Source: Chlorokybus atmophyticus (taxonomy: Eukaryota > Plantae > Mesostigma and Chlorokybus algae). Taken from it: a stretch of DNA of 64,000 nt. Positions 4,210 to 43,150 of this stretch are shown piece by piece. Numbering within the stretch: position 1 is the stretch's first letter; every line of letters starts with the position of its first letter. Under the pieces are notes generated by a model, which ran no database searches, was not told the DNA's origin, and saw only the letters and a program-made list of their open reading frames with translations. Location: positions 585,368 through 649,367 of the forward strand of contig RHPI01002533.1 of assembly GCA_009103225.1 (NCBI GenBank), read 5' to 3'. Made by a program: the position numbers and the translations under genes.

Positions 4210-6605
4210 ATGGGGAGTATGCAGGGGTGGGCTCTGGCCATGGGTGCCGCAGGGGCGGCTGGCTTGACAGCGGCAAAGCCTGCACATCTGCTGCCAGCTG
4301 CTTCAAGAAGAACGGAAAAGTCCTTTGTCGTGAGGGCGTCCTCAACGCCATCATCGTCATCATCGTCCTCCTCTCCGTCCTCCTCCTCGTCCTCTCCATC
4401 CACGTCCTCCTCTCCAGGTGACGCCTTGCGCAGCCTCCCGCTGAGACGCGATCCTCCTGCCACTCGCCGCTTGCCCGCTCCGCCAGCTGGTGCCACCCCT
4501 CCCGGTGAAAATGGTGCACTTGCAGTTGCTGGACCTCCACCTACTCCTCCTCCATCTCCGCCTAATCCTCCAGCTCCTCCCCCGCAGCGCCGCACCCGTA
4601 GATCTGGCGTGGACATTGAAGAGGTGAGACCACTTGAACACTCCGACCGTTGGTGTTGATACTTGACCACCACGCATCTGAGTATTCAAGCCCGGGAGCT
4701 TGCATGCCAATTAGCTAGCATGCAAGCCACCTGGCATGATGTCGTTTTGGCAAGCATGCTAGTAAAGCTATGTCTTTCTTTGTCTCTTGTCTCTTGTTGG
4801 TTACAGGTGAGGCGGTCCATTGAGAGGCTTGAAGGCAAGGATCGGGTGGTGAGGGCGACGCTGAAAGAGCTTGCGGATGCCATGGCTGCATTCGGGCAGG
4901 AGAATGGCACAGCTGCTGCACCTGCCAGCAGCAGCAGCAACAGCAGCAACAGCAGCAGCACAGATGTCAGTCTCAGCCTCAGCCCCAGCAATGCCAGCAC
5001 TGGCAACGGCGCAAGCACGAGTGCGAGCGCGAGCGCCAGTGTCAGCGGTCAAGGTGTTGACGTTGCGAGCACAGCTGAAGAGAACTTGAACGAGGAGGAG
5101 GAGGATGTGGTGTGCGTCGTGACGCATCCGGGCGCAGAAAGCTGCACCAAGACTATCATCGCCACCGATCTTGCAAACCGGTGAGTGCTGCGGGTCAATT
5201 GTTTTCTGGCCACACCGGACAAGTAAAGACTGTCATGCAAATGGCTGACATCCTTGCATGGATGCAATTTGGCAAAAAGGTTGCAACTGAGATGGCATGC
5301 TGTTGTACTGTTGTCATTGTTCAGGACGGCCATGGTGACCATGACGACCACAGTGCACATGCAAGACATTGATGGCGTTGCATCGGCAATGACCGCCCGG
5401 GACTTTGTGGCGCTGGCAGCACAGGGTCTTGCTGAGGCCGCCTTGGAATTGAAAGAAAGCCGCTCGCAAGATTTTGGTGGCGTGCGCAAAGAGATATTGC
5501 AGTTGCATGAAGGCATCGTCAACGTGCTTGCCAAAGGCAAAGTCATTTCTACCAAACCTAATGAGCCCCCCAGCAACTTTGGACACGAGAGCTTCATATG
5601 CGAGTTGGAGGACAAGAGCACCGGCAAAGTGGTATATACACCCTCAACTGCAATGCATGCTGCTGAAAGGTTTTGTGCTGTTTGTGCTTTACCCGACTGT
5701 TTGCCAGCTTAAAGCGTTGTTCAAGCCAACGATTGAGGGTCACGCGGATGGCTGGCATCGCGCTCCCATCGAGTGGGTAGCTTATGAGCTGAACCTGCTG
5801 CTGGGCATGGATTACGTCCCGCCTGTAAGTTGGTAACAATGCTGCTGATACGACGTCTCCTGCGCAGTGCGTTGCACGCTGTTGTTGGCACACCAGTTAC
5901 ACATACGGTTGAACAATTGCACATGACCAGGTGGCCTACCGAAGGGGAGGAATCAGTGTGTGCGGCCGGACATTTGAGCAAGGCGCGTTTATATACTATG
6001 CCCCCAACTGCAGGCCGCTAAACAGGGTGCATCCAGACAACTGGGGGGTGCCGGTTGAGAGGCTGCTGAGTGACACGCGGATACTCGACGTGCTGCTCAA
6101 CAACTCGGACCGGCACGCCGGTCACTTCCTTCTTGGAGAACACTGGGCCACTGGGGCAATGTCGGCTATTCTGATCGACCATGCAGCAGGCTTTCGCAAG
6201 GTCAGTCTGTCTTGGGGGGGGGGGTATTTGTCTCGGCGCCAAAGTGAAGTACTTGCTGCTGACCTGTGGCTGTGTGTATGTGGGTGTGTGCAGGAGGCTG
6301 TTGTGAACATGACGCATGAGAACGCGTTTGAAACCGGCCCCGTGCGCTCCGTCTCTGCACAGACGTACCTTCGGTTGCGGTTTCTAGACGCCACTACGAT
6401 CCGGCACAGATTTGCCAGCGTGCTGTCGGAACGAGAGATGAAGAGCATGCTCGCACGACGCAAACTGGTATGTACATGCATGCATGTGCCTCGTCCATAT
6501 GTACTTATTACAATGGGCTAAGGCAGCTGTGTTATGCGCCAGGTTCTCGACTATCTGGACGAGCTGGTGGAAAGCAAAGGTTACAATGAGACGGTTCTGA
6601 GCTGA
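4210..6605 (+). CDS. Probably plastid-targeted atypical kinase of the PI4K type II-like fold; multi-exon
   Basis: The N-terminus is Ser/Ala/Arg-rich and transit-peptide-like (KSFVVRASSTPSSSS). Spliced exons give LFKP (ATP Lys), EWVAYELNLLLGMDYVPP, LLNNSDRHAGHF (catalytic loop) and AILIDH. The last exon VLDYLDELVESKGYNETVLS ends at TGA 6603-6605. Start codon uncertain (4210 or 4240). Confidence 0.75.
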
Positions 6606-7310: not shown

Positions 7311-8035
7311 TCAGCTGAATGCGCCGCTGGACTGCCTGCGTAACCGCTCGAACCGCCAAATTGCTGAGCCAAAAGCAACCACAACCGCAATCCCAAGCAG
7401 CCAAGGGAAGCGCTTTGGCAAAGGCGCATCTCGTCGCGGGCTGGCATGCAATGACGGATGCTGTTGGTGTCCATTTGTTGCATGGTCGTGCCTCGAATCA
7501 CCATTCTGGTCATGCTCGTTGGCTTCCAGTTCCCATAAGTGCAGCTGCTCATGATCGCGTAACGACCGCAACATTACATACTTGTTGCAGTTGTGGCAAA
7601 GCTCCGTCCGGCTCCCGCATGTGTTCTCGTGCTCTGACAGGTCTGTCGCCACACACGGCAGCTCGCAAAACTCGCAAGCTATTAGTCGGCGCGGGCATGC
7701 ATTGCTTTCATGGTCCTCCATGTGTCGCACCTCAAGCTGTGTACCGCACTTGCTGCATGGCATCTATGCACACATGACAGCATCAAGTGTGTACAGCGTG
7801 ATGCAACGTCACGGACATGTTTCCATCACCTGTCCAAAGTTCACACCACACATGCAAGCATGCTATGCTGCGTGTAGCGTATTTATCTTGCCCGAGTACC
7901 TGTGCATGCTGTTGCTGGAAGTGCTCCTGCTTGGAACTGCGAGGGATCATTCCTCCGCATAATTGGCAGCGCTCCAAGTTGCGCCTGCAGTGCACTTCAT
8001 GCAAGGCCAGGTTGCCAGCAGGAATTGTAGAGCCG
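7311..8035 (-). CDS. TRAF-type zinc-finger protein with C-terminal transmembrane anchor (XAF1/TRAFD1-like, plant type); 5' exon not resolved
   Basis: Repeated Cys/His units: HEVHCRRNLERCQLCGGMIPRSSKQEHFQQQH, CSKCGTQLEVRHMEDHESNACPRRLIACEFCELP, HENTCGSRTELCHNCNKYVMLR. Hydrophobic tail WLLGIAVVVAFGSAIW. One intron between ~7765 and ~7890. Confidence 0.8.
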
Positions 8036-8799
8036 CTGCGCGCACAAAGTGGTGTCAAGGTTGTCCGTGAGGCAGCTTGGAATGCAGCACTGCAGGGGAT
8101 GCGTAACACTACATTGTGCCCATAAGGCTGGAACTGGAATCACCAAGTCGCTGCATGCAGCACGCAACATGTACCAGTGGTCTTATTTTTGAAGGGGTAA
8201 ACTTCAAGCAACGTAAGAGCAATGAGCTTTTGGCCACTGCTGGCAGTCACGGTCTGCATTGGTGGGTTCAACCTGTCTTTGACAATCAGCTCCGACGACG
8301 TCTGACTACACGCACTGCGCATGCTATCAGGTGTTCCATCGATAGCTACACACTCTCTACAAGGCAACGACCACCTTCTACAACCTCGCCCCAGCACAAG
8401 CAAGCTCACAAGCGTGCTCCACAAGCAGGGAATGCTCCATGCAAGAAGATTGCTGATTCATTTGCTGAGCCATAGCATAGATAAGGTGCCGAAAGCAAGC
8501 AATTTGCGTGAAGAACTCTGGTTGCTTACCAGTGCGTGCACACCGCCTCCAACACAGAGCTCTCCACCAACTTCATGGTGGTGAATCTGCAGCTGTTGCC
8601 TTGAATAGCAAGCTTCAATGGCCAAGCAGCACAGCCGCCTAGTCAATTGAGCAGTTTGCTTAGCAAAGTTTGCCACACAAATTGCCGCCACCGTCGCCGC
8701 TAGTAACGCCCGTGTTGAGCAATACTGCAACTGTTGTTTTTGCAACTGCTGGTGGGCAAGTTGTTGACGGGGCGGCGGAGGAGGACAAGGCGGCGGCGG

Positions 8800-11700
8800 G
8801 GCCGTTCAGGTGCGCTGCAACGGGCGATGAGTGCTTGCGGGCGGGTGGTTGCGTTAGTTGAGAGGATAGAAAATTAGCTGAGGCTGAAGACGAGAATGCT
8901 GTAAGCTTGTGACAGTGCGGGCTGGTAGCTTTGAGTTGAGCAGCCTTCAACGCATTGTGATCTCTCTAGGCATGTTATACAGGTGACCAACTGGTTGTCG
9001 TGGTGTAGCATGTTACTAATGAATGCCGTCGCTGTTGTCGTGGCTTTTTGCCTGACGTCGTGTGCATAATTGCCCCAGCATTTGGACCACTAGCTGATTG
9101 TTCGCAACTGCTGTTAGCGACAAAACCACTGTTTTGTCGAGTGTTGCGGTGGGGCAATAGCTGCATCACAGAGATTGCTACATACAGGGGGTTAACGCAA
9201 CAACCGTAACCACAACCTGTGAATCTCTGTGACACTGTCAGCAAACACAAAGGACCCGGTAAGCATGTTGAGAAAAGAGCGAGAGCATACTGCTGGACTC
9301 CTCAGCTAGGTGCTCATGCTAACGGCATGCACAACGCCTGATATGCGCTTCGGTAGCTTCGCGAGGCTGATCGGCATTGATGCTACACTGGCCTCCGTCC
9401 GTTTCAACTTCCTACATCACGCTGTGGTAAATACTGTTGGAGTGTTTGGTGCATTACTCTCATCACCAGGTTGCGTTGTTGGCACCAAGCAGTACAGCCT
9501 GCGATGCCGATACGTACAAAGGCTTGCCTTGTGCATGGATGTATGAGTGTGTACAACGCTCTTAACGATACGAAGATGCAGGTATTATTGTCCGCGCGCT
9601 CTCCAGCAGCGATGCCAGGTCAGATATGCTGCATGCTAGAGCGAGCTAATTAGCTGTGCTCCGTCAGATTAAACCATCGTTTTTGTTACCTGCCAGCAGT
9701 GTCATGACAGTTGGGTGCTTCGGGTAGTTGCAGGAGCACTATGCCCACATCTGGCAGTTTGTCTTGTCCTGCATGCATGCATGGGCGTGGGTCAGGTGCA
9801 GAGCGCCTTCGGCGCGCTAGCTGCGAAATCGCAATAAGGGCCACCCGATCAGCGCCAGCTCCTCCTGGTCCTGGTTATGACTGTTTGGCAAGCGGTTGCT
9901 TATCGCGCTACAAGTTGGTGAGCTGCTTGCTGCTGTTGTCTGTGCACAATAGTTGTCGTGCATGTGGTGTTGACTGCAAACTGACTTGCAGCCAAGCACT
10001 CTAGCAAGCTGTGTTGGTTGACATGTACGCAACTAGCTGCACTTGGACGTCCACAAAACCAATCAATTACATAAGAGAGCCAGTCGAGCTCCCAAGGTAT
10101 CTCTGGTAATCATCTAGAAATCTATTGAAATTTTTGCTGAAGTACAGCACAGTCGCAGATTGTCGCGTGGCAAAATCTGAGTTATGACCACGCACGGAGT
10201 TGTGGGCCACCTCATGACAGACGCTCAGAAACCAGTCCACTATCATATCCGTATTGTTCCCTTGGTAGAAGCCAGCATTGAACCAGAGCTCGCCTTGTCG
10301 GTTGAACGCCTTAACTGGGGACTCCTCATCATAGAAGATCATGATGCCCCAGTTGGGCTGCGCAAACACGTGTTGTACAAACAGTTGTAGAAACCCGAAC
10401 AAGCCAAGACATCTGTCCAGCTGTTCCTGAGACAGCTGTTTGCCAGCTGGCAGGTACACATGGCATGGCATGCTTGCTCCTTCACTTGAGGTATTGAGGC
10501 AGTAGTTTGACTTGAGCAGGTCGATCCTTGGACCTGCACATGGCTCCAGCTTGGGTGCCACACCAGGTCCGCCAGGTATAACGCCTTGTACGTGTCCGTC
10601 ACGACAGTGCCTTCCCAGAGACCCGCTGACTGCGTCCTGCACACGACGGGTATGCTCTGGTTGCCGTGTATCTGGATGATCAGTGGTTTCCTCTGTGCTG
10701 TCGACAACCACCCACTCGTCTTCTGCGTGTCCTGCTTGCTGCGGTGATGTGGGTGTTGCAGGTGTTTGTGACCTGTCGCCTCGTTGTTGTGAATGCTGCT
10801 GTTGTTGCCTTGGAGGTGCAGGTGATGCTGGCGGCATCTCTTGCGGGCCTGCAGGCAGCTGCCCAATGCTCTCCAATGCTGGTGCGTTGACTGCTATCAG
10901 CCGCGCCATGATGTCCTTGTGAATGTCGGGGTGTTTGTCTCTCAGGGCCTTTAGCTCCATGATCTCAAATATTATCAGGTTGATGAGGCATGCGCCTCTG
11001 TTGCATTGGGTCCTCTGACACTGCATTGTACGCCTGTGCTTGGCCACCAGCCTTTGGTGAACCCGCTCCAAGGACTGCAGGTACTTGAATTGTATCACGA
11101 GTCTCAGTGGCTGTCCGTGCAGTGCAAAGATCACGTTGTCAAACCTGTTGTTGTAGTCTCTCACTAGCAAGGCGGTCACTGGGATCGCCAGAGAGTTTGC
11201 TACAATGCTCAGCACTTTCTGAACATCATGGCGCTGTTCTGCAGTCATATCAGGTTCTCCCTTGTCCACCAGCTCCTTCGACTTCCAGGACCAAGCCTCG
11301 TCAATGCTCGACAGCAGACCAGCATACTTCCATATATCCAACATTGCTGCAGACACAATCTGCGGCACGTAGTCAAGCATTTCAACAATGTCTTGGTCAA
11401 GATGATGGCGTGTCGGGAAATGATCCTCGCCGAAAATTTCCCACAGTCCATGGGCCAATGCCCGCATTTTCTTGCTTTTCCCGCTTTTTGCTGCATGGGC
11501 TTGCAATGCAGAAGCAATACTTGAGGCTTCGTTGGTGTCAATGGCGTTGTACAGGGCTTTGCAAAGGCGTTGGTATGCAGCTTTACTGTGAGGGACATTG
11601 TTTTTGTGCTGCTCGTTCAACTGGTACACTGCAGCGGGAAGGACGCGGCACAGCAGGGCAGGTATGGATATGCTTGAGCGATCGCGTTCAACACCAAATG

Positions 11701-13850
11701 ACTGCAGTTCTGATGTACTCCCTGTGTAGTTCAACCCGATGCCGAGCACTGTCTCCCAAGAACTGTACTGCACCTGGATGCCGTGCAGAAAGATTTTGCC
11801 CTCATAGGCTCTATCGTATAGGACATCCGCTTCTGCTGTATGCAGGACATCAACGTCTGATGCCAGAAACAAGTACTTGCTCGTATCTACGAGCGGTGTT
11901 GTAAAGTGTCTTCCAAAAACTGTGCATACTGGCGTTCCGCAGACTGGGTGGGACTGTTGCCGGAGTAATGACCAAATTTAAGCTGTCCTGAGTGAAGCCA
12001 GGATCCCGCCGATACTCAAAGTTCCAGAGATTGTTCCCAGTAACATATCGGGCAGAAGCACCACTAGCAATCAGCCTGTTGATCTGCACTTTCATGCCTT
12101 CACCGAAGTTGCCAGCATTGTAGTCGTTGTCCCTGCTGGTGCTGTGGCCCAGGAGCATCACATCCAGTGAAAGGGTGGTGGCGAAGTTGACTGCAATAAA
12201 GCCCTGTCCGCCGGCTTTGCGACCAAAGCCCACGCAAAGGCCCAGACATTGAGCTGGTTGGTTGGCTGGTGGCAGGTCCACTTCGAGTAGGGCATGGAAG
12301 GCACTGATGCCAACCTCACGTAGCTTTGTCACGCTTGCTGCAGGTACACGCCAAGCGCCAACACGATGGGTGCGCGACAGGCGCAGACACTGGTCCATCC
12401 AGTTCTGCACCAGTTCTCGCACGCCACCATTGTAATGCGGCGAATAATCGCGTGCCATGTTGAGACTCCTTGCATAACCAACCTGCAAAGCTTGTGGCGC
12501 CTGCGAGCCTCCTCCAGACATGTTGACGGTGACCGGTCGGTGCGCTCGCAGGCACTCAACAAGTAATCTTGCAATGCACTGCTGTTGAGTATCGTCTATC
12601 TCCACAGACTGCTCTGCATGCCACAAACGATGTCAATGACTGTGTTGGAGTATGCCACTTATATCGCATTGACAACAGGCACCTGCAACGCAGTGGCCAG
12701 CAGATGTTCTTACCTTTGATCGCCATAGCAACTGCCTGCCATTCGCCATCCATTTCCGTCGCCGACTTAAAGTGGTTGTGCTCTGAGGCGAGTCAAGCGA
12801 GTCACCTGTTGTCCCGAGTATAGACATCGGTGTCATGAAGGGGGCTCAGATAAAGAGCTACAACCATTGTCGTACATGCCGACTATGCGACCCTATGAGC
12901 GCACAATGCCGAGGACTCAAAACACACACTAATCAACAACAGCCTATGCTTACTACGCTGCATCTGAGAGAGGGGGGGGCTAGGTCTGAGTGAAGTGAGA
13001 GTGGTTGCAACGACCAAACTGAATGTCGTTAAGTTCAGTCGTATTGCAGTGCTACCCATTTCATTAATGCCGCAACAGTAGCAAAGGTAGCAGGTAGAAA
13101 AGGGACAATATGCAGTGCCAAGATCATGCACGTCATGCATTTACTTACTGTCAAGATATGCAGCAGGAGGGATGGGTGGGGGAACTCGTCAACTTGGAAG
13201 CAAGTCTCACATGCGCATGCTGTCTCCTGGCAACTTGGTCACCTGTCGACTCTCCTTCGCGCTCCAGCTATAGACCACAGACCATTCTACAGTGGCTGGC
13301 TCTCAACAAGCAGCTGCTCCCGCTGACAGCTCACAGCCAGTCGCTCCCGCCCTAGCTTCGCCCCTGCAACTCTTCCCTTCTGCCCGACTCCTCGCTAGCT
13401 TAACTCAACAGCGCTTTCGAGAAGCCATCAGGGCAGGCGCAGGAGAGCCCGCGCGGTCAAGTGATGGGACGAACGTCCGCATGCGCCGGGGCGTTTGTGA
13501 TTTGCAACTTGAGAGTTACATCACATTGCCCAGGCGCTCGGGTGCAAGCGCACGTGGCAGTCGTGACTCGAACGTTCGCGTGCACAGGCGTTGCAAGTTG
13601 CGACACATATCGCCTGGCGCTCTCGGGCGCGTGATTGTGACCGCACGTGGCAATCGCGGCAGCAGCTGGTTTACTGAGCCGACTTGAGTGAAGCGAACAT
13701 GATCGCACCTGACGCGAGCTCCGAGGTTGAAGAGCAAGAGCTTTCGTCAAATTCCCATCTTTGGCCTGATAAACACACTTGTCAGGCGGGTGTGTTGTCA
13801 TACTAAAATTATGAGTTGATTTGATACATGCTTCCGCATAACAGAAGGAA
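8800..13850. repeat. Copy A of a ~5-kb segmental duplication (paralogous to ~25330-30660)
   Basis: Collinear same-orientation similarity, e.g. ctgtaagcttgtgacagtgcgggctggtagct (8900) vs ctgtaagcttgtgccagtgctggctggtagct (25490); tatagaccacagaccattctacagtggctg (13270 vs 30001); aacgtccgcatgcgccgg (13473 vs 30188). Boundaries approximate. Confidence 0.9.
10067..12753 (-). pseudogene. GHKL ATPase-HExxH metallopeptidase gene, copy A, frameshifted
   Basis: ORFs 11850-12626 and 10067-11872 together align to the single 849-aa ORF at 26812-29361. At ~11930 copy A reads gtgcatactggcg where copy B reads gtgcacactgtggcg (2-bp deletion). Motifs RELVQNWMD, GNFGEGMK and CHEVAHNSVRGHNSDF are retained. Confidence 0.8.
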
Positions 13851-24790: not shown

Positions 24791-26811
24791 TGACCTATGT
24801 TGACGAAATAGCTACATGCACTACGTATGGCAAATTGTGCTTGTGCTGCTTATATGCCATGATCACAACCAATGAACGGCAACGCGCAGAGAGCACGTGC
24901 ATGTTCCACTGCGGCTTAAAATGGTGAGCATGCTCCACATTTGGGCAATGCTCCACGCGAATTGAACTTTGATTAAGTGCTTAGCGACAGCACAAGGATG
25001 CCACAAGCACGCTTTGCGCTGCAATAACTGATTTGCCTCCGTCCGAAACAGTGTGCTTCCTTACCAATGCGTGCACGCTGCCTCCATAACGGAGCTCTCC
25101 ACCAAAGTCATGCTGCTACGTTTCAGCCTCTAGTTGTCACCTTGACACACAAGCTTAAGCGGCCAAGTAACAAGCCGCCTAGGCTAGGTGGTCTGGCCCA
25201 AGCTTGCTGTCAGCTAAGCAATGCACAATTAAGCACTTTGCCACTGCCGCCGCCTGCCTGCAGTCATGCCCTGGGCAACGACCGTAGGCACGAGCTAAGG
25301 CTGGTACTAGTTTGAGGGGGTGGCGAAGGCGGCGGCGGTAGCGGTGGAGCAGGGTGAGAGGCGTCACTGGCGGTCAAGTGGATTGCCCGAGAGTGAAGCG
25401 CAAGCAATAGCCTGACCGCTTGCGGTTGCTTGGTTGCGTGTGCGTTAGTTGACGAGGTCACGGTAAGCTGGTTGTTGAGGTGTGGATACTCTGTAAGCTT
25501 GTGCCAGTGCTGGCTGGTAGCTTCAAGTTGAGTAAGCTTCAACGTGTTATCTTATTCAAACCGGCACATGGTGTGGTTGCAAATGCCGTCGCTGTTGTGG
25601 GTGCTGCTTGACGCGTGCATACGTGGTTGATCTTCTGCTCAACAGCTGTCAAGCTTTCTGTTGTACTGCGCGCCTGCATGCGGCAGCGTTTGAGCCAGCG
25701 TCTTCTGACTTGCGACAAAAATACTGCTCCGTCACGTACACAACAGTTGCACCACACAGGTTGTTACGCGGGCACCACTCAAGTCCTGCCTCAACAACCC
25801 GTGATCCTCTTTGTAACCTTTTTGCAAGCACACAATAGCTGGTCAGCATGTTCAGGACAAGCATGCATTGCTCTGGACTGCTCATCCAGGCCTTGTGCTC
25901 ATGTTGACTGTAGTAAAAACGGTGACCTCATGTGTGCCCATGTGTGCTCATGTGTGGACAGCTTTCTGGCTTCAACAGACCGGTGGCTGCCTCATGGGCA
26001 ACCATACCCGGGGGGTTGCCCATATTAGCTTTCTGCTGCAACACCCTGTGGTTCATGCTGTCGAAAGTTGGTGCAGTATGCTCACCACCCCCACATTGGG
26101 CTGTTAGGGAAAAGCAGTACCGCATGTGTGATGCCTACACCACTGTACAAAGCTTGTGCAAATGCAACGAGGCAGGTACTCCTGTCTGCGCGCTCTTCAG
26201 CAGTGCCAGGTCAGATATGCACCTTGCATGCTACTTTGCCCTCAGTTGAACTGTGTTGGTGTGACTTGCCAGGAGTCATGTCACAAAAAATTGGTCTGCC
26301 ACATACACAACAAATGCTGTGGCATACCATGATATACTGTACCTGCCCGTGTCTGGCAGTTTGTCAGGCGTGGAGGGGTGGGGGTGGGGTGGGATTGTAT
26401 TCGTGGGTTGATTGGGTGGCGAGTGGCTTCAGCATGCTAGCTGTGACATTGCAATTGGAGTCCCTCAAGTCAGTGCCAACCCCAACTAGCATGAACATTC
26501 TGCGCCGAGCTGTTGCGCTATCTCTGGCATATGACGATGGAGCTGGTTGCTGCTCTTATCTGTGTATAATGTCTGTTATGCATATGGTTTCAATTATGCA
26601 TTGACTGCAGCTAAGAGCACTCTAGTCTAGCAAGCTGTGTTGGTCGACATGCAAGCAAGCAGGTGCACTTAGTAGTGCGCTTCACACAACCACACCAGCC
26701 AACTACATAATAAGCATGTCAGTCGAGCTTTTAAGCTGTTGCTAGTGTTTCTGATTTCTAGTTCTTTGTTTCTAGTGATGTTTCTACTAACCGACAGTCT
26801 TGTTCTATTGT

Positions 26812-29486
26812 TCAAGCCATGAGTCTGTTATATTTGTCACTGAAGTACAGCACAAGCTCAGCTTGTTGCATAGCAAAATCTGAATTGTGACCGCGCACGG
26901 AGTTGTGGGCCAGCTCGTGACAGACGGTAAGAAACCAGTCCGCTTTCTCCGCTTCCTTGTTAATCCCTTGGTAGCATGCAGCATTGAACCAGAGCTCTCC
27001 TTGTTGTCGGTTGAACGCTTGGACTGTGGACATCTCATCATAGAAGATCATGATGCCACATTCGGGCTGCGCGAACACACTTCTTATAAGCAGCTGTAGC
27101 ACGCTGTACAAGTCATGACACTTGGCAAGTTGTGTCGGTGACAGTGACAGCATGCCAGACGGCAAGTACACAAGGCACGGCACACTTGCTGTTGCGCCTG
27201 CATTGAGGCAGTAGTTTGACTGTAGCAGGTTAATTCTTGGAGCTGCACACGGCGCCGGCGTGGCTGCGGCTCCAGGTCCGTCACCAGGTATAATACTTTG
27301 TAAGTGTTCCTCACGACAGTGCCTTCCAACAGACCTCCTCACTGCCTCTTGCACATTGCGGTTATGCTCCAGCTGCCATGTATCTGTTGCTGGATGATCA
27401 GTCGTTGCTTCTGTGCTGTTGACAACCACCCAATCGGCCTCTGCGTCTCCTACTTGCTGCGATGCTGTGATTGTTGCAGCTGCTTGTTCTGAGGTGTCGC
27501 CTTGCTGTTGCGGCTGGTGTTGTTCTGGTTGTGGAGGTTTAGGTGATGCAGTCGGCATCTGTTGCAGGCTTGCAGGCTGCCGCCCAATGCTCTCCAATGT
27601 CGGTGCGCTTGCTGCTAATAGCCGTGCCATAATGTCCTTGTGAATATTAGGGTGCTTGTCTTTCAAGGCCTTCAGCTCCGTGATCTCAAACATGAGCAGG
27701 TTGATGATGCATGCGCCCCCGTTGCACTGGCTTCTCCGACATTCCAACGTACGCCTGTGCTTGCTCACCAGCCTTTGGTGAACCCGTTCCAAAGACTGAA
27801 GGTATCTAAACTGCACAACAATCCTCAATGGCTGCCCGTGCAGTGCAAGGACCACATTATCAGATCTGTCGTCAAAGTCTCGCACTAGCAAGGCAGACAC
27901 CTGGATTGCCAGAGAACTTGCTAGGACGCTCAGCACTTCGTTAACTTCATGTCGCTGTTTTGCAGTCATATCAGGTTCTCCCATCTCCTCCAGCTCCGTC
28001 GATCTCCTGGACCAAAGCTCTTCAATGGTCGGCAGCAGACCAGCGTACTTCCATATGTCCAACATCGCTGCAGACACCCTTTGCGGCAGGTAGCCAATCA
28101 TTTTAACATCGTCTCCTTCCAGATAGTAATAACATGTAGGGAAATGAGCCTCGCTATGTTGGTCTCGAAAAACACCCCCCAATCCACTAGCCAATGCCTT
28201 CATTTCCTGGCTGCTTCCGCTGGTCCTTGCATGGGCTTGCAAGGCTGAAGAAATGCTTGAGGATTGATCGGTGTCAATGGCGTTGTAGAGGGTTGTACAG
28301 AGGCGTTTGTATGCTTCACTGTGAAGGTCAGGTGCTTCGCGGTGCTGGTCCAACTGGAACACCGCAGCGGGAAGGACGCGACACAGCAGGGCAGGTATGG
28401 ATATGCTCGAGCGATCGCGTGATACATCGAGCGAGTGTAGTCCTGTTGTGCTCCCTGTGTAGTTCAGACCGATGCCAAGCACTGCATCCCTAGAACTGCA
28501 CTGCACCTGTATGCCGTGCAGAAAGACTTTGCCCTCGTAGGCTCTATCATACAGAATATCCGCTTCTGCTGTGTGTAGGAGATCAACGTCTGATGCCAGA
28601 AACAGGTACTTGCTCGTATCTACGAGCGGTGTTGTGAAGTGTCCTCCAAAAACTGTGCACACTGTGGCGTCCCGCAGACTGGGTGGGACTGTTGCCGGAG
28701 TGATAACTAGATTCAAGCTGTCTTGCGTGAAGCCAGGGTCCCTTTGATACTCAAAGTTCCAGAGGTTGTTCCCAGTAATATACCGGGCGGAAGCACCACT
28801 AGCAATGAGCCTGTTGATCTGCACTTTCATGCCTTCACCGAAGTTGCCAGCATTGTAGTCGTTGTCCCTGCTGGTGCTGTGGCCCAGGAGCATCACATCT
28901 AGTGAAAGGGTGGTGGCGAAGTTGACTGCAATGAAGCCCTGTCCGCCGGCTTGGCGGCCAAAGCCCACGCAAAGGCCCAGACATTGAGCTGGTTGGTTGG
29001 CTGGTGGCAGGTCCACTTCTAGTAGGGCATGAAAGGCACTGATGTCAGCCTCACGCAGTTGTGTAACACTTTCTGCAGGTACACGCCAAGCGCCAACACG
29101 GTGGGTGCGTGACAGGCGCAGACACTGGTCCATCCAGTTCTGCACCAGTTCTCGCACGCCGCCATCATAATGCGGCGAATACTGGCGCGCCAAGTTGAGA
29201 TTTCTAGTATAGCCTTCTGTCGGCGTGTTCAAAGCTTGTGGCACCTGTGAGCCTCTTACAGACATGTTGACGGTGACGGGTCGGTGCGCTCGCAGGCATT
29301 CAACGAGTAAGTTTGCAACGCACTGCTGTTGAGTATCGTCCATGTTCTCTGCATGCCACAAACGATGTCAATGACTGCGTTGGAGTATGCCACTTATGTC
29401 ACATTGACAAACAGGTACTTGCAACGCAGTGGCCAGATGTTCTGACCTGTGAGCGCCATAGCAACTGCCTGCCATTCGCCATCCAT
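26812..29486 (-). CDS. GHKL (Bergerat-fold) ATPase fused to a C-terminal HExxH zinc metallopeptidase-like domain; intact copy
   Basis: 849-codon open frame (26812-29361). N-box GGVRELVQNWMD, ATP-lid LLGHSTSRDNDYNAGNFGEGMK, VSRDRSSI, Q/P-rich linker, C-terminal IFYDE...AFNRQQGELWFN...WFLTVCHELAHNSVRGHNSDF. A probable short first exon MDGEWQAVAMALT (29447-29486) has a GT donor conserved in both copies (inferred). Confidence 0.8.
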
Positions 29487-30465
29487 TCCGCCACTGACCT
29501 GAAGTGGATGTGCTCTGATCTAAGTCAAGCGAGTCACCTGTTGTCCCCAAGCACAGACATCAATGTCATGAAGAGGGCTCAGATATAGACCTACAACCAT
29601 TGTCGTACATGCCGACTCTGTGAGCCTATGAGCGCCCAATGTAGAGGACTACAGACACACACCCAGCAATTAGCCTACGCTTGCTGCGGTGCGTCTGAGA
29701 AGTGTGTGTGTGTGTTAATGTCTAAATTGAGAGTGGTTGTAATGACTGAACTAAATGTCGTTGAGTCGTTGAATCGTATTGCAGTGCTACCAGTTTTATT
29801 GATTCCGTAACAGAAGCAATGGTAGCAGGTAGAAAAGGAGAACTTGCAGTGCCGAGATCATGCACGTCATGCATGTACTTACCGGCAGATATGCAGCAGG
29901 CGGGATGGGTGCAGGGACTTGTCAACTCGGAAGCAAGTCTAACATGTGCATGCTGCTCCTGGCAACTTGGTCACCTTTCAACTCTCCTTCGCGCTCCAGC
30001 TATAGACCACAGACCATTCTACAGTGGCTGACTCACACCAAGCAGTAGCTGCTCCCGCTGATAGCTTACAGCCAGTCTCTCCCACCCTAGCTTAACTCCT
30101 CCGACCGTGCAACACCTCCCTTCTGCCAAGCTCCACCCTAGCTTAACTCCTCAGCGCTTTCAGCGGGCATCAGGGCCAGGCGCAGTCAACGTCCGCATGC
30201 GCCGGAGCGTTTGTGACTTGCAACTTGCGAGTTACATCACAGTGCCCAGGCTCTCGGGTGCGAGCGCCTGGGCATTGTGATGTGACTCGCACGTGGCACT
30301 GCGGGCCTAACGTGACGGCCAAAAAGTCCGCATGCCTGGGGCGTTGCGACAGGCAACGCAGTGCCAGGCGCTCGGGTGCGTCAGCGCACGTGATAGCGAC
30401 CGCACGCGATAATCGCGGCAGCTACTGGTTCACTGAGCCAAGTTGAGTTACAGCGAACATGGTCT

Positions 30466-30537
30466 CACCTGACGCAACCTCCGGTTAACGAGCAGTTCTC
30501 AGAAAACCTACTCGTTAACTGGAGGTCGCGTCAGGTG
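30466..30537. repeat. 27-bp stem, 18-nt loop inverted repeat
   Basis: CACCTGACGCAACCTCCGGTTAACGAG (30466-30492) vs CTCGTTAACTGGAGGTCGCGTCAGGTG (30511-30537); 2 mismatches. Confidence 0.9.
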
Positions 30538-39098: not shown

Positions 39099-39399
<301 letters not shown>

Positions 39400-42400: not shown

Positions 42401-43150
42401 ATAGACTGCGTCATTGCTGGTTGATGCACTACTGCTTGAATGCCGGACAAATGGCCACGCGCTCCTGTGCTCAAACCCAGCCTACTTCGTTCGGCACGCG
42501 CGCGCGACTTCGCACGCTCGCGCACATCTTAGCAAAGGTAGGCATGCATTGGAGGTGCATGCAGTCAGCATGCATCTCCACTACTGGTTGAATGCCGGAC
42601 AAATGGCCACGCGCTCCTGTGCTCAAACCCAACCTACTTCGGTTTGGCACGCGCGCGCGACTTCGCACGCTCGCGCACATCCTAGCAAAGGTAGGCATGC
42701 ATTGGAGGTGCATGCAGTCAGCATGCACAGCGAGATTGGCAACAACATATAGCCGCCTAGCTCTGTCTATCTGCTCTGGCTTTTGCAATGTCGGCTTCAT
42801 CGTGGGGTGGGTATGGGTGATAGTGGAGGCCTGCAGCCACGCTACATGTAGTACATGGACTGCGCGGAAAACAAATTGCTCTTGAATGGAAATGCATATG
42901 ACTGTTGAGCGTATCTCTGCATTCCGTTGTGCTTGTTCCCACAATCGCAATTGGTCCCGCATAGTTCTGACAAGGGGCTCCAAGGTCTGCAGCTCCTGAT
43001 CCACCACTCTTTGTTGCAAAAGCGAGCCACCAAGCAGCTCTCTGTGTGAAGCTGGTCTTTAATTGCTTGCTGGTTTGTCCAATGGTGGTGATGCATATTG
43101 GACAGCCCCATTGCTGACGCATGCCATGATCCATGACGTGGCGCCCGATA
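39457..43150 (-). pseudogene. Degenerate multi-fragment accessory gene containing an OTU-like cysteine protease domain
   Basis: ORF 40972-41562 has WDHFNAPTDGNCFYRCVF (OTU catalytic D-G-N-C). The adjacent frame 40755-41021 supplies EPEAHFWLL (catalytic His candidate). Upstream are CPIC and coiled-coil fragments (42471-43150); downstream are further minus-strand fragments to 39457. That these fragments form one gene is inference. Confidence 0.6.
42427..42727. repeat. Tandem duplication of a ~150-bp unit (period 152)
   Basis: cactactgcttgaatgccggacaaatggccacgcgctcctgtgctcaaaccc... at 42427 is repeated at 42579. Confidence 0.9.

Follow-up and report, generated by a model that had tools for sequence, protein, structure and literature searches.

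A gene on the minus strand of a 64,000-nt stretch of DNA from the alga Chlorokybus atmophyticus (assembly GCA_009103225.1, contig RHPI01002533.1, positions 585,368 to 649,367; this whole stretch is referred to below as the window) is predicted to encode a two-module protein in which an Hsp90-like ATPase of the GHKL (Bergerat-fold) class is joined to a metalloprotease domain resembling Wss1. The gene, copy 1 of a tandem pair, occupies positions 26812-29486 and, exactly as proposed in an earlier reading of the letters made without database searches (the sequence-only reading), it is nearly intronless, with one short exon and one of 2.5 kb. Exon 1 (29447-29486) begins with the ATG at 29486, comprises 13 codons plus 1 nt and ends at a GT donor at 29446/5; a single GT..AG intron of 98 nt (29349-29446) follows, with its acceptor AG at 29350/49, and exon 2 (26812-29348) contributes 2537 nt including the stop codon. 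In this splice model, which was read from the sequence, the 40-nt exon 1 is joined in frame to exon 2 through the junction codon GAG, giving a predicted product of ~858 amino acids (aa); the exon 1 peptide, MDGEWQAVAMA, also heads the JGI model of the paralogue. Exon 2 lies within an open reading frame (ORF) of 849 codons listed for the window at 26812-29361 on the minus strand, which served as the query in the protein searches and which supplies the residue numbers used throughout. The contrast in exon size with other genes of the window is considered real, since the zinc-finger gene nearby is split into three short exons within 1.3 kb. The GC content of copy 1 is similar to that of the neighbouring DNA, and the only close database protein, JGI model Chlat1/136, maps to the window at 99-100% identity, the locus being nuclear Chlorokybus DNA.

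All of the motifs picked out in the sequence-only reading are present in the ORF: RELVQNWMD at residues 70-78, NFATTL at 147-152, where DxGxG would be expected, GNFGEGMK at 172-179, an RDR motif within SRDRSS at 314-319, a Q/P-rich linker at ~590-715 and, at residues 814-829, the HExxH-containing stretch CHELAHNSVRGHNSDF with its additional downstream His. These motifs are not chance occurrences, as residues E71, N75, D78, N147, G172, G175, G177, K179, R317, H815, E816, H819 and H825 show conservation of at least 90%, or no variation at all, when up to 61 homologues are aligned.

The GHKL ATPase core extends over aa ~40-250 (28609-29244, minus strand). An AlphaFold2 model of the N-terminal 561 residues, built on alignments of homologues, reached a predicted local distance difference test score (pLDDT) of 87 and a predicted template-modelling score of 0.84, and matched full-length TRAP1/Hsp90 in Foldseek with an E value of 1.8e-6 and a probability of 1.0 over model residues 15-550. 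The first ~210 residues superpose on the N-terminal domain of Hsp90 with a Z score of 9.2 (VIA-align), and also on GyrB, TopoII, MutL, MORC2 and histidine kinases; all of the 50 top structural rows for this model were GHKL proteins, which bears out the assignment that had been made from the motifs. Within the N box (ExxxNxxD), E71, N75 and D78 are at least 90% conserved across 61 sequences, whilst in the G2 box (GxxGxG) G172, G175 and G177 are invariant or nearly so and are followed by K179. The G1 box departs from the DxGxG pattern in that Asn147 replaces the adenine-contacting Asp; this Asn is nearly invariant in the eukaryotic family and in the phage type described below, and the fungal SACS-DUF3684 protein P0166 likewise has Asn at the G1 position. 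The substitution therefore looks like a character of the clade rather than a sign of decay. Neither Pfam HATPase_c nor HATPase_c_3 matched the window protein at E≤1, and full-length and N-region profiles searched against PDB sequences returned only low-complexity or chance matches. Membership of the MORC family was considered and rejected, there being no Pfam match and the Z scores for MORC2 (6.7) and MORC3 (5.3) falling below those of Hsp90 and the topoisomerases; canonical sacsin was rejected as well, as the window protein matched no SACS, DUF3684 or TmtA model.

Behind the ATPase core lies a transducer-like and helical middle region (aa ~251-600; 27562-28608, minus strand), defined by the Foldseek match to TRAP1/Hsp90, by the profile alignment to the phage type up to aa 499 and by invariant columns, among them R317 in the transducer-like part. 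A further cluster, H528/C541/C546/C551 (~27709-27780), is invariant in the eukaryotic proteins and stands in a segment which has no counterpart in the phage type; it may form a structural zinc site. The possibility that this Cys-cluster region (aa ~490-555) is a degenerate second zincin was dropped, as the phage-type zincin profile matches the C-terminal domain only. The two modules are separated by a disordered, Q/P-rich linker of low complexity (aa ~601-715; 27217-27561, minus strand), which has the lowest column conservation of the protein and a ratio of non-synonymous to synonymous substitution rates (dN/dS) of 0.68 between the two copies.

The C-terminal module (aa ~716-849; 26815-27216, minus strand) is a minimal zincin of the Wss1/WLM type with the zinc site H815-E816-x-x-H819-x5-H825. 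The sequence-only reading had recognised a zincin signature here, and structure prediction does find the corresponding fold: the AlphaFold2 model of the C-terminal 150 residues has a pLDDT of 92, its top Foldseek match is Wss1 (probability 1.0), and the closest structures are the Wss1 proteins of S. cerevisiae and S. pombe, with Z scores of 9.0 (109 residues aligned, root mean square deviation 3.1) and 8.0, followed by minigluzincins (selecase), YbeY and SPRTN (Z 6.4). In the C-domain profile, HELAHNxxxxHxxxF aligns residue for residue with HELTHNxxxxHDxxF of Wss1, and across 60 sequences the catalytic Glu E816 and the zinc-binding H815, H819 and H825 either do not vary or are conserved to at least 90%. 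Pfam WLM (PF08325) did not match the window protein, and matched two of 34 relatives at an E value of 0.0026, below the cut-off. A stand-alone member of exactly this zincin subfamily (AFN..G.LF.N, W.WF..CHELAHN..H), a protein of 152 aa, is encoded at 5782-6240 of the IMG/VR contig UViG_2816332431_000007, an AT-rich contig of 84.6 kb which looks like that of a giant virus and in which a RING-finger gene adjoins the zincin gene.

The resemblance to uncharacterised phage and bacterial ATPases, to which the sequence-only reading had pointed, proved to be genuine homology. Profile phrog_6077 matched the window protein with an E value of 2.9e-13, over aa 147-359 only, and hhalign of the eukaryotic alignment A1 against an alignment of 17 phage and bacterial proteins of ~440 aa (A4) gave a probability of 100 and an E value of 2.7e-39 over aa 52-499. 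A Wss1-like HExxH domain also forms the end of most of these phage-type proteins; the alignment of that domain (A5) matches the eukaryotic C domain with an hhalign probability of 93.6 and matches Wss1 by sequence with an E value of 3.4e-4. As the phage-type C domain is homologous to the eukaryotic one, the two-module design is shared and was not assembled in the alga; it is ancient, existing as a version of ~440 aa in phages and bacteria and as one of ~850 aa in scattered eukaryotes. Relatives are encoded by phages of the Vequintavirinae, and searches based on language models and on shape pointed to PF25856 (MPN635_N) clusters of Uroviricota and Bacillota. One relative, P0104, carries a precomputed PF25856 match; our local copy of Pfam, which seems to be without PF25856, gave none for the same protein. 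Protein gp101 of phage GAP31 reached an E value of 7.5e-4 against a HATPase_c-type Pfam model, below the cut-off.

The prokaryotic homologues are widespread, being found in Bacilli, Lachnospiraceae, bacteria of the candidate phyla radiation and actinomycetes, with phage-like DNA at the loci inspected. At these loci the neighbourhoods consist of replication and nucleotide-metabolism modules, and no defence islands were seen. In Oceanobacillus, for example, the homologue lies among genes for ribonucleotide reductase, nucleotide pyrophosphohydrolase, Gam, thymidylate synthase and DNA polymerase, and another phage or prophage homologue adjoins genes for a family-A DNA polymerase and an RNA ligase. 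The algal protein and the phrog_6077/PF25856 proteins thus have in common a homologous ATPase and middle region, in many cases the terminal Wss1-like HExxH domain, and an overall shape that is similar (template-modelling (TM) scores of 0.56-0.61). They differ in that the latter are 370-460 aa long, compared with ~850, lack the Cys-cluster insert and the long linker, and form a separate clade in which some members, such as GAP31 gp101, are without the protease.

The eukaryotic family became visible only on exhaustive searching, as a word-indexed protein search gave nothing beyond the paralogue model or a single fungal protein whilst an exhaustive HMMER search yielded 252 relatives, ~35 of them full-length (750-1100 aa, 25-31% identity). 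Alignments A1-A3 of this eukaryotic family were the input to AlphaFold2. The named full-length homologues come from Pedinophyceae sp. YPF-701, Tribonema minus, Balamuthia, Palpitomonas, Ancoracysta, Pharyngomonas, Sanchytrium, Picozoa and two deep eukaryote lineages, and the shape search added a cluster of Ascomycota (815 aa, TM 0.69). In a maximum-likelihood tree of the shared region, for which metagenomic rows were assumed to be of eukaryote or phage type according to length and motif, a branch with a Shimodaira-Hasegawa approximate likelihood ratio test (SH-aLRT) value of 100 divides the eukaryote-type rows from the phage/bacterial-type rows; the two Chlorokybus copies are sisters, and the pedinophyte green alga stands closest to them (SH-aLRT 91).

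A few relatives are without HExxH. One of these, the metagenomic protein P0026 (1121 aa), has a J domain in its linker (HPD at 793), and a switch from protease to Hsp70 recruitment is a possible reading of its sequence. The family occurs both in the parasite Sanchytrium tribonematis (P0005) and in the algal host genus Tribonema (P0012/P0171); as their proteins do not group in the tree, transfer between host and parasite is not indicated.

The duplication of the gene, also claimed in the sequence-only reading, was confirmed by self-BLAST, in which 10137-13736 matched 26840-30494 at 80% DNA identity; the match takes in ~1 kb of co-duplicated sequence upstream of copy 1 (29487-30494), corresponding to 12761-13736. 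Copy 2 (10067-12760, minus strand) consists of two ORFs, 11850-12626 and 10067-11872, together with its own first exon. The ORFs are split by a 2-bp deletion near 11932, which in the DNA alignment is the single frame-breaking indel of this copy, all other coding indels being multiples of 3. The break may have arisen recently or be an error of assembly, or splicing may circumvent it, as the JGI model P0001 has it by placing an intron across the break. The JGI annotation also fuses copy 2 with the zinc-finger gene that lies downstream of it; this fusion is doubtful, as the third zinc ligand is lost from the model and the rest of the family shows nothing comparable. Protein identity between the two copies amounts to 84% for the N part and 65% for the C part. 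Values of dN/dS between the copies rise from 0.22 in the ATPase core to 0.35 in the middle region and 0.41 in the zincin, the linker standing above all of these; the low values in the folded parts (0.22-0.41) indicate that purifying selection has acted on both copies through most of their history. The synonymous rate itself (dS), compared between 28663-29361 and 11853-12626, is 0.26 in the ATPase core, about half that of the remaining gene (0.45-0.57), which hints at gene conversion affecting the 5' part, or at a mosaic history.

Directly downstream of copy 2, at 7314-8639 on the minus strand, lies the zinc-finger gene already mentioned, an XAF1/TRAFD1-type TRAF zinc-finger gene of three exons with a C-terminal hydrophobic tail. 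Downstream of copy 1, at 25049-25171 on the same strand, there is a decayed remnant, with stop codons, of the first exon of this gene, and nothing else of it is left. A dispersed repeat of ~245 nt with 86% identity (14814-15055 and 24489-24734), situated in the AT-richer spacer that separates the two copies, is not collinear with the gene duplication; it probably represents a small mobile element. Elsewhere in the window, near-perfect tandem repeats were found at 39101-39399 and 42427-42727, in a 50-nt register at 99% identity and in units of ~150 nt at 97%.

GHKL ATPases are known to power chaperone action, changes of DNA topology, mismatch repair and the compaction of chromatin; proteolysis is not among the processes which they are known to drive. 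The explanation that we favour for the Chlorokybus protein is a two-module design in which an Hsp90-like GHKL ATPase and a Wss1-like protease act together as an ATP-gated clamp protease. By analogy with Hsp90, MutL, MORC and Tiamat, binding of ATP would dimerise the N-terminal domains into a clamp, the clamp would capture a substrate and the tethered protease would cleave it. The most likely substrates would be proteins bound or crosslinked to DNA, which are favoured because modules for DNA replication and nucleotide metabolism surround the phage versions and because the protease is Wss1-like. In the domain identities and family relationships we have high confidence, and the explanation as a whole we judge to be, by a small measure, probable; the mechanism of ATP-gated proteolysis, which is drawn by analogy, is more tentative and falls somewhat short of an even chance.

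There are several points that weigh against this explanation. The window protein has no match to Pfam, NCBIfam, the Tiamat models of PADLOC or PDB sequences, and it is from structure prediction, motifs and transitive homology that the ATPase assignment is derived. At 8-9, the Z scores are moderate, although the GHKL assignment is held to be secure in spite of this because the hits were unanimous and the motifs are conserved. Both Chlorokybus copies have Ser where their relatives keep a conserved Lys before the G2 box, and this change, together with the replacement of Asp by Asn in G1, makes nucleotide specificity and competence for ATP hydrolysis uncertain. Dimerisation and substrate capture are proposed by analogy only, and the idea of a DNA-linked substrate is taken from the phage neighbourhoods and the likeness to the Wss1 fold, no DNA-binding motif having been found in the protein.

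The same two modules could be put to other uses. A role as a conflict or immune effector, along the lines of the immune or stress effector suggested in the sequence-only reading, would follow the manner of Tiamat, with the ATPase and middle region detecting a ligand of viral or foreign origin and the protease taking the nuclease's place as the effector; such a role overlaps the clamp-protease mechanism and differs from it in biological role. It would accord with the relationship to Tiamat/sacsin-type ATPases, the existence of Tiamat-like proteins with swapped effectors, peptidases included (bioRxiv 10.64898/2026.09.30.754977), the patchy eukaryotic distribution, the tandem duplication with diverged C-terminal halves and the adjoining XAF1/TRAFD1-type gene. 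We nevertheless consider it rather unlikely, as dN/dS is below 1 everywhere and no positive selection is visible at this resolution, the prokaryotic relatives are phage-encoded in replication modules and not in host defence islands, and PADLOC gave no match for the window protein. Quality control of proteins, with the Hsp90/sacsin-like module holding misfolded clients for degradation by the zincin and no link to DNA, appears less probable still. The TM scores to full-length Hsp90 are low (~0.3), even though the alignment to full-length Hsp90/TRAP1 takes in all of the N-terminal 560 aa, and whilst sacsin also pairs Hsp90-like repeats with a J domain, such a domain is found in the linker of only one of the 34 family members, P0026, which has no HExxH; in addition, the closest protease fold is DNA-dependent and the phage context is one of DNA metabolism. 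That one or both modules are catalytically dead and serve for binding only, as proposed for the Wss1-like fold of Tiamat, we hold to be very improbable: the catalytic Glu and three His of the zincin are retained, as are the N-box Glu and Asn and the G2 box. The G1 Asn and the Ser in place of Lys in Chlorokybus, the inactive protease-like fold of Tiamat and the few relatives without HExxH would fit such a pseudoenzyme or scaffold; however, a fungal SACS-DUF3684 protein of the broader group has the same G1 Asn, and the Tiamat of B. cereus hydrolyses ATP (bioRxiv 10.64898/2026.09.30.754977).

Turning from function to origin, the sequence-only reading had regarded the gene as laterally acquired. 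A recent acquisition by Chlorokybus from a phage, a bacterium or a giant virus, possibly as the cargo of a mobile element, could be argued from the almost intronless and duplicated gene, the transposon-like features of the window, the phage relatives of the family and the stand-alone zincin on the giant-virus-like contig. This idea is not sustained by the homologues, and we give it hardly any credence: the closest relatives are full-length eukaryotic proteins of the same architecture from many supergroups, the phage type forms a separate and distant outgroup only, and the nearest named relative belongs to another green alga. The GC content also matches the surroundings, the gene carries a spliceosomal intron, and scans of IMG/VR returned no full-length relative of the eukaryote type. 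What was found comes close to the opposing case, namely vertical inheritance of an algal orthologue with the same architecture; the architecture and the green-algal sister are both there, whereas orthology to MORC or to canonical sacsin is not. The Chlorokybus gene is thus best seen as a lineage-retained member of a patchy eukaryotic family, and not as a recent foreign import.

A family which reaches from phages to eukaryotes and tethers an apparently active Wss1-type protease to a GHKL clamp offers a directly testable model of ATP-gated proteolysis, and the phage versions of ~440 aa would suit biochemical and structural work. More broadly, the family could stand as a novel class of ATP-dependent proteases in which a GHKL clamp takes the place of an AAA+ ring; this class would be common to phages and many eukaryotes and would remove proteins bound or crosslinked to DNA. 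The family may also represent the ancestral and still-active state of the ‘dead’ Wss1-like fold of Tiamat, NO VEIN and sacsin-type proteins. This wider proposal we regard as doubtful. The family does link two active fields, one concerned with DNA-protein-crosslink proteases and the other with the Tiamat/NO VEIN/sacsin group, for whose Wss1-like fold a pseudoenzyme status has just been reported.

Tiamat, NO VEIN and their relatives combine an Hsp90-like ATPase with TPR-like folds, a Wss1-like inactive metalloprotease-like fold and a PD-(D/E)xK nuclease, sacsin combines Hsp90-like repeats with a J domain, and fusions of the ATPase to DUF3684 are noted in InterPro as often carrying a C-terminal metallopeptidase (all bioRxiv 10.64898/2026.09.30.754977). 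The link to fungal DUF3684 proteins proposed in the sequence-only reading holds for the protease: the eukaryotic profile matches the extreme C-terminus of a 1735-aa SACS and DUF3684 protein of Sanghuangporus (hhalign probability 98), which ends in the same HExxH domain. An hhalign comparison of the N region with a single fungal SACS sequence recovered the N box only, and the N-terminal regions of the phage type weakly match the TmtA models of Tiamat, with E values down to 8e-7 over ~70 residues from the N box to G2. The Chlorokybus protein shares with the Tiamat/NO VEIN/sacsin group the Hsp90-like GHKL ATPase, the Asn at G1 (seen in the fungal P0166), a transducer with a conserved Arg and a Wss1-like fold downstream of the ATPase. 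However, it is about half the size or less, matches no TmtA, DUF3684 (PF12449) or SACS (PF25794) model and has no PD-(D/E)xK nuclease, ending with the zincin at aa 849 with no further ORF or domain; moreover its HExxHx5H is intact, whereas the Wss1-like fold of Tiamat is described as inactive. The best reading of the Chlorokybus family is as a compact relative of the Tiamat/sacsin-type ATPases with an apparently active protease.

With Wss1 and SPRTN the protein shares the minimal zincin fold and, in the case of Wss1/WLM, a zinc site with the same spacing and the same flanking residues (HEL-x-HN-x4-H-[DN]-x2-F). It differs from them in that no ubiquitin-like, SHP, VIM or SIM elements were identified in it, that Pfam WLM does not match it and that its zincin is fused to an ATPase, which those of Wss1 and SPRTN are not. 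The likeness to FtsH is one of functional analogy only: there too an ATPase and a zinc metalloprotease are contained in one polypeptide, providing a model for ATP-coupled proteolysis, but FtsH is membrane-anchored and joins an AAA+ ring to an unrelated zincin of family M41, where the Chlorokybus protein would employ a GHKL clamp.

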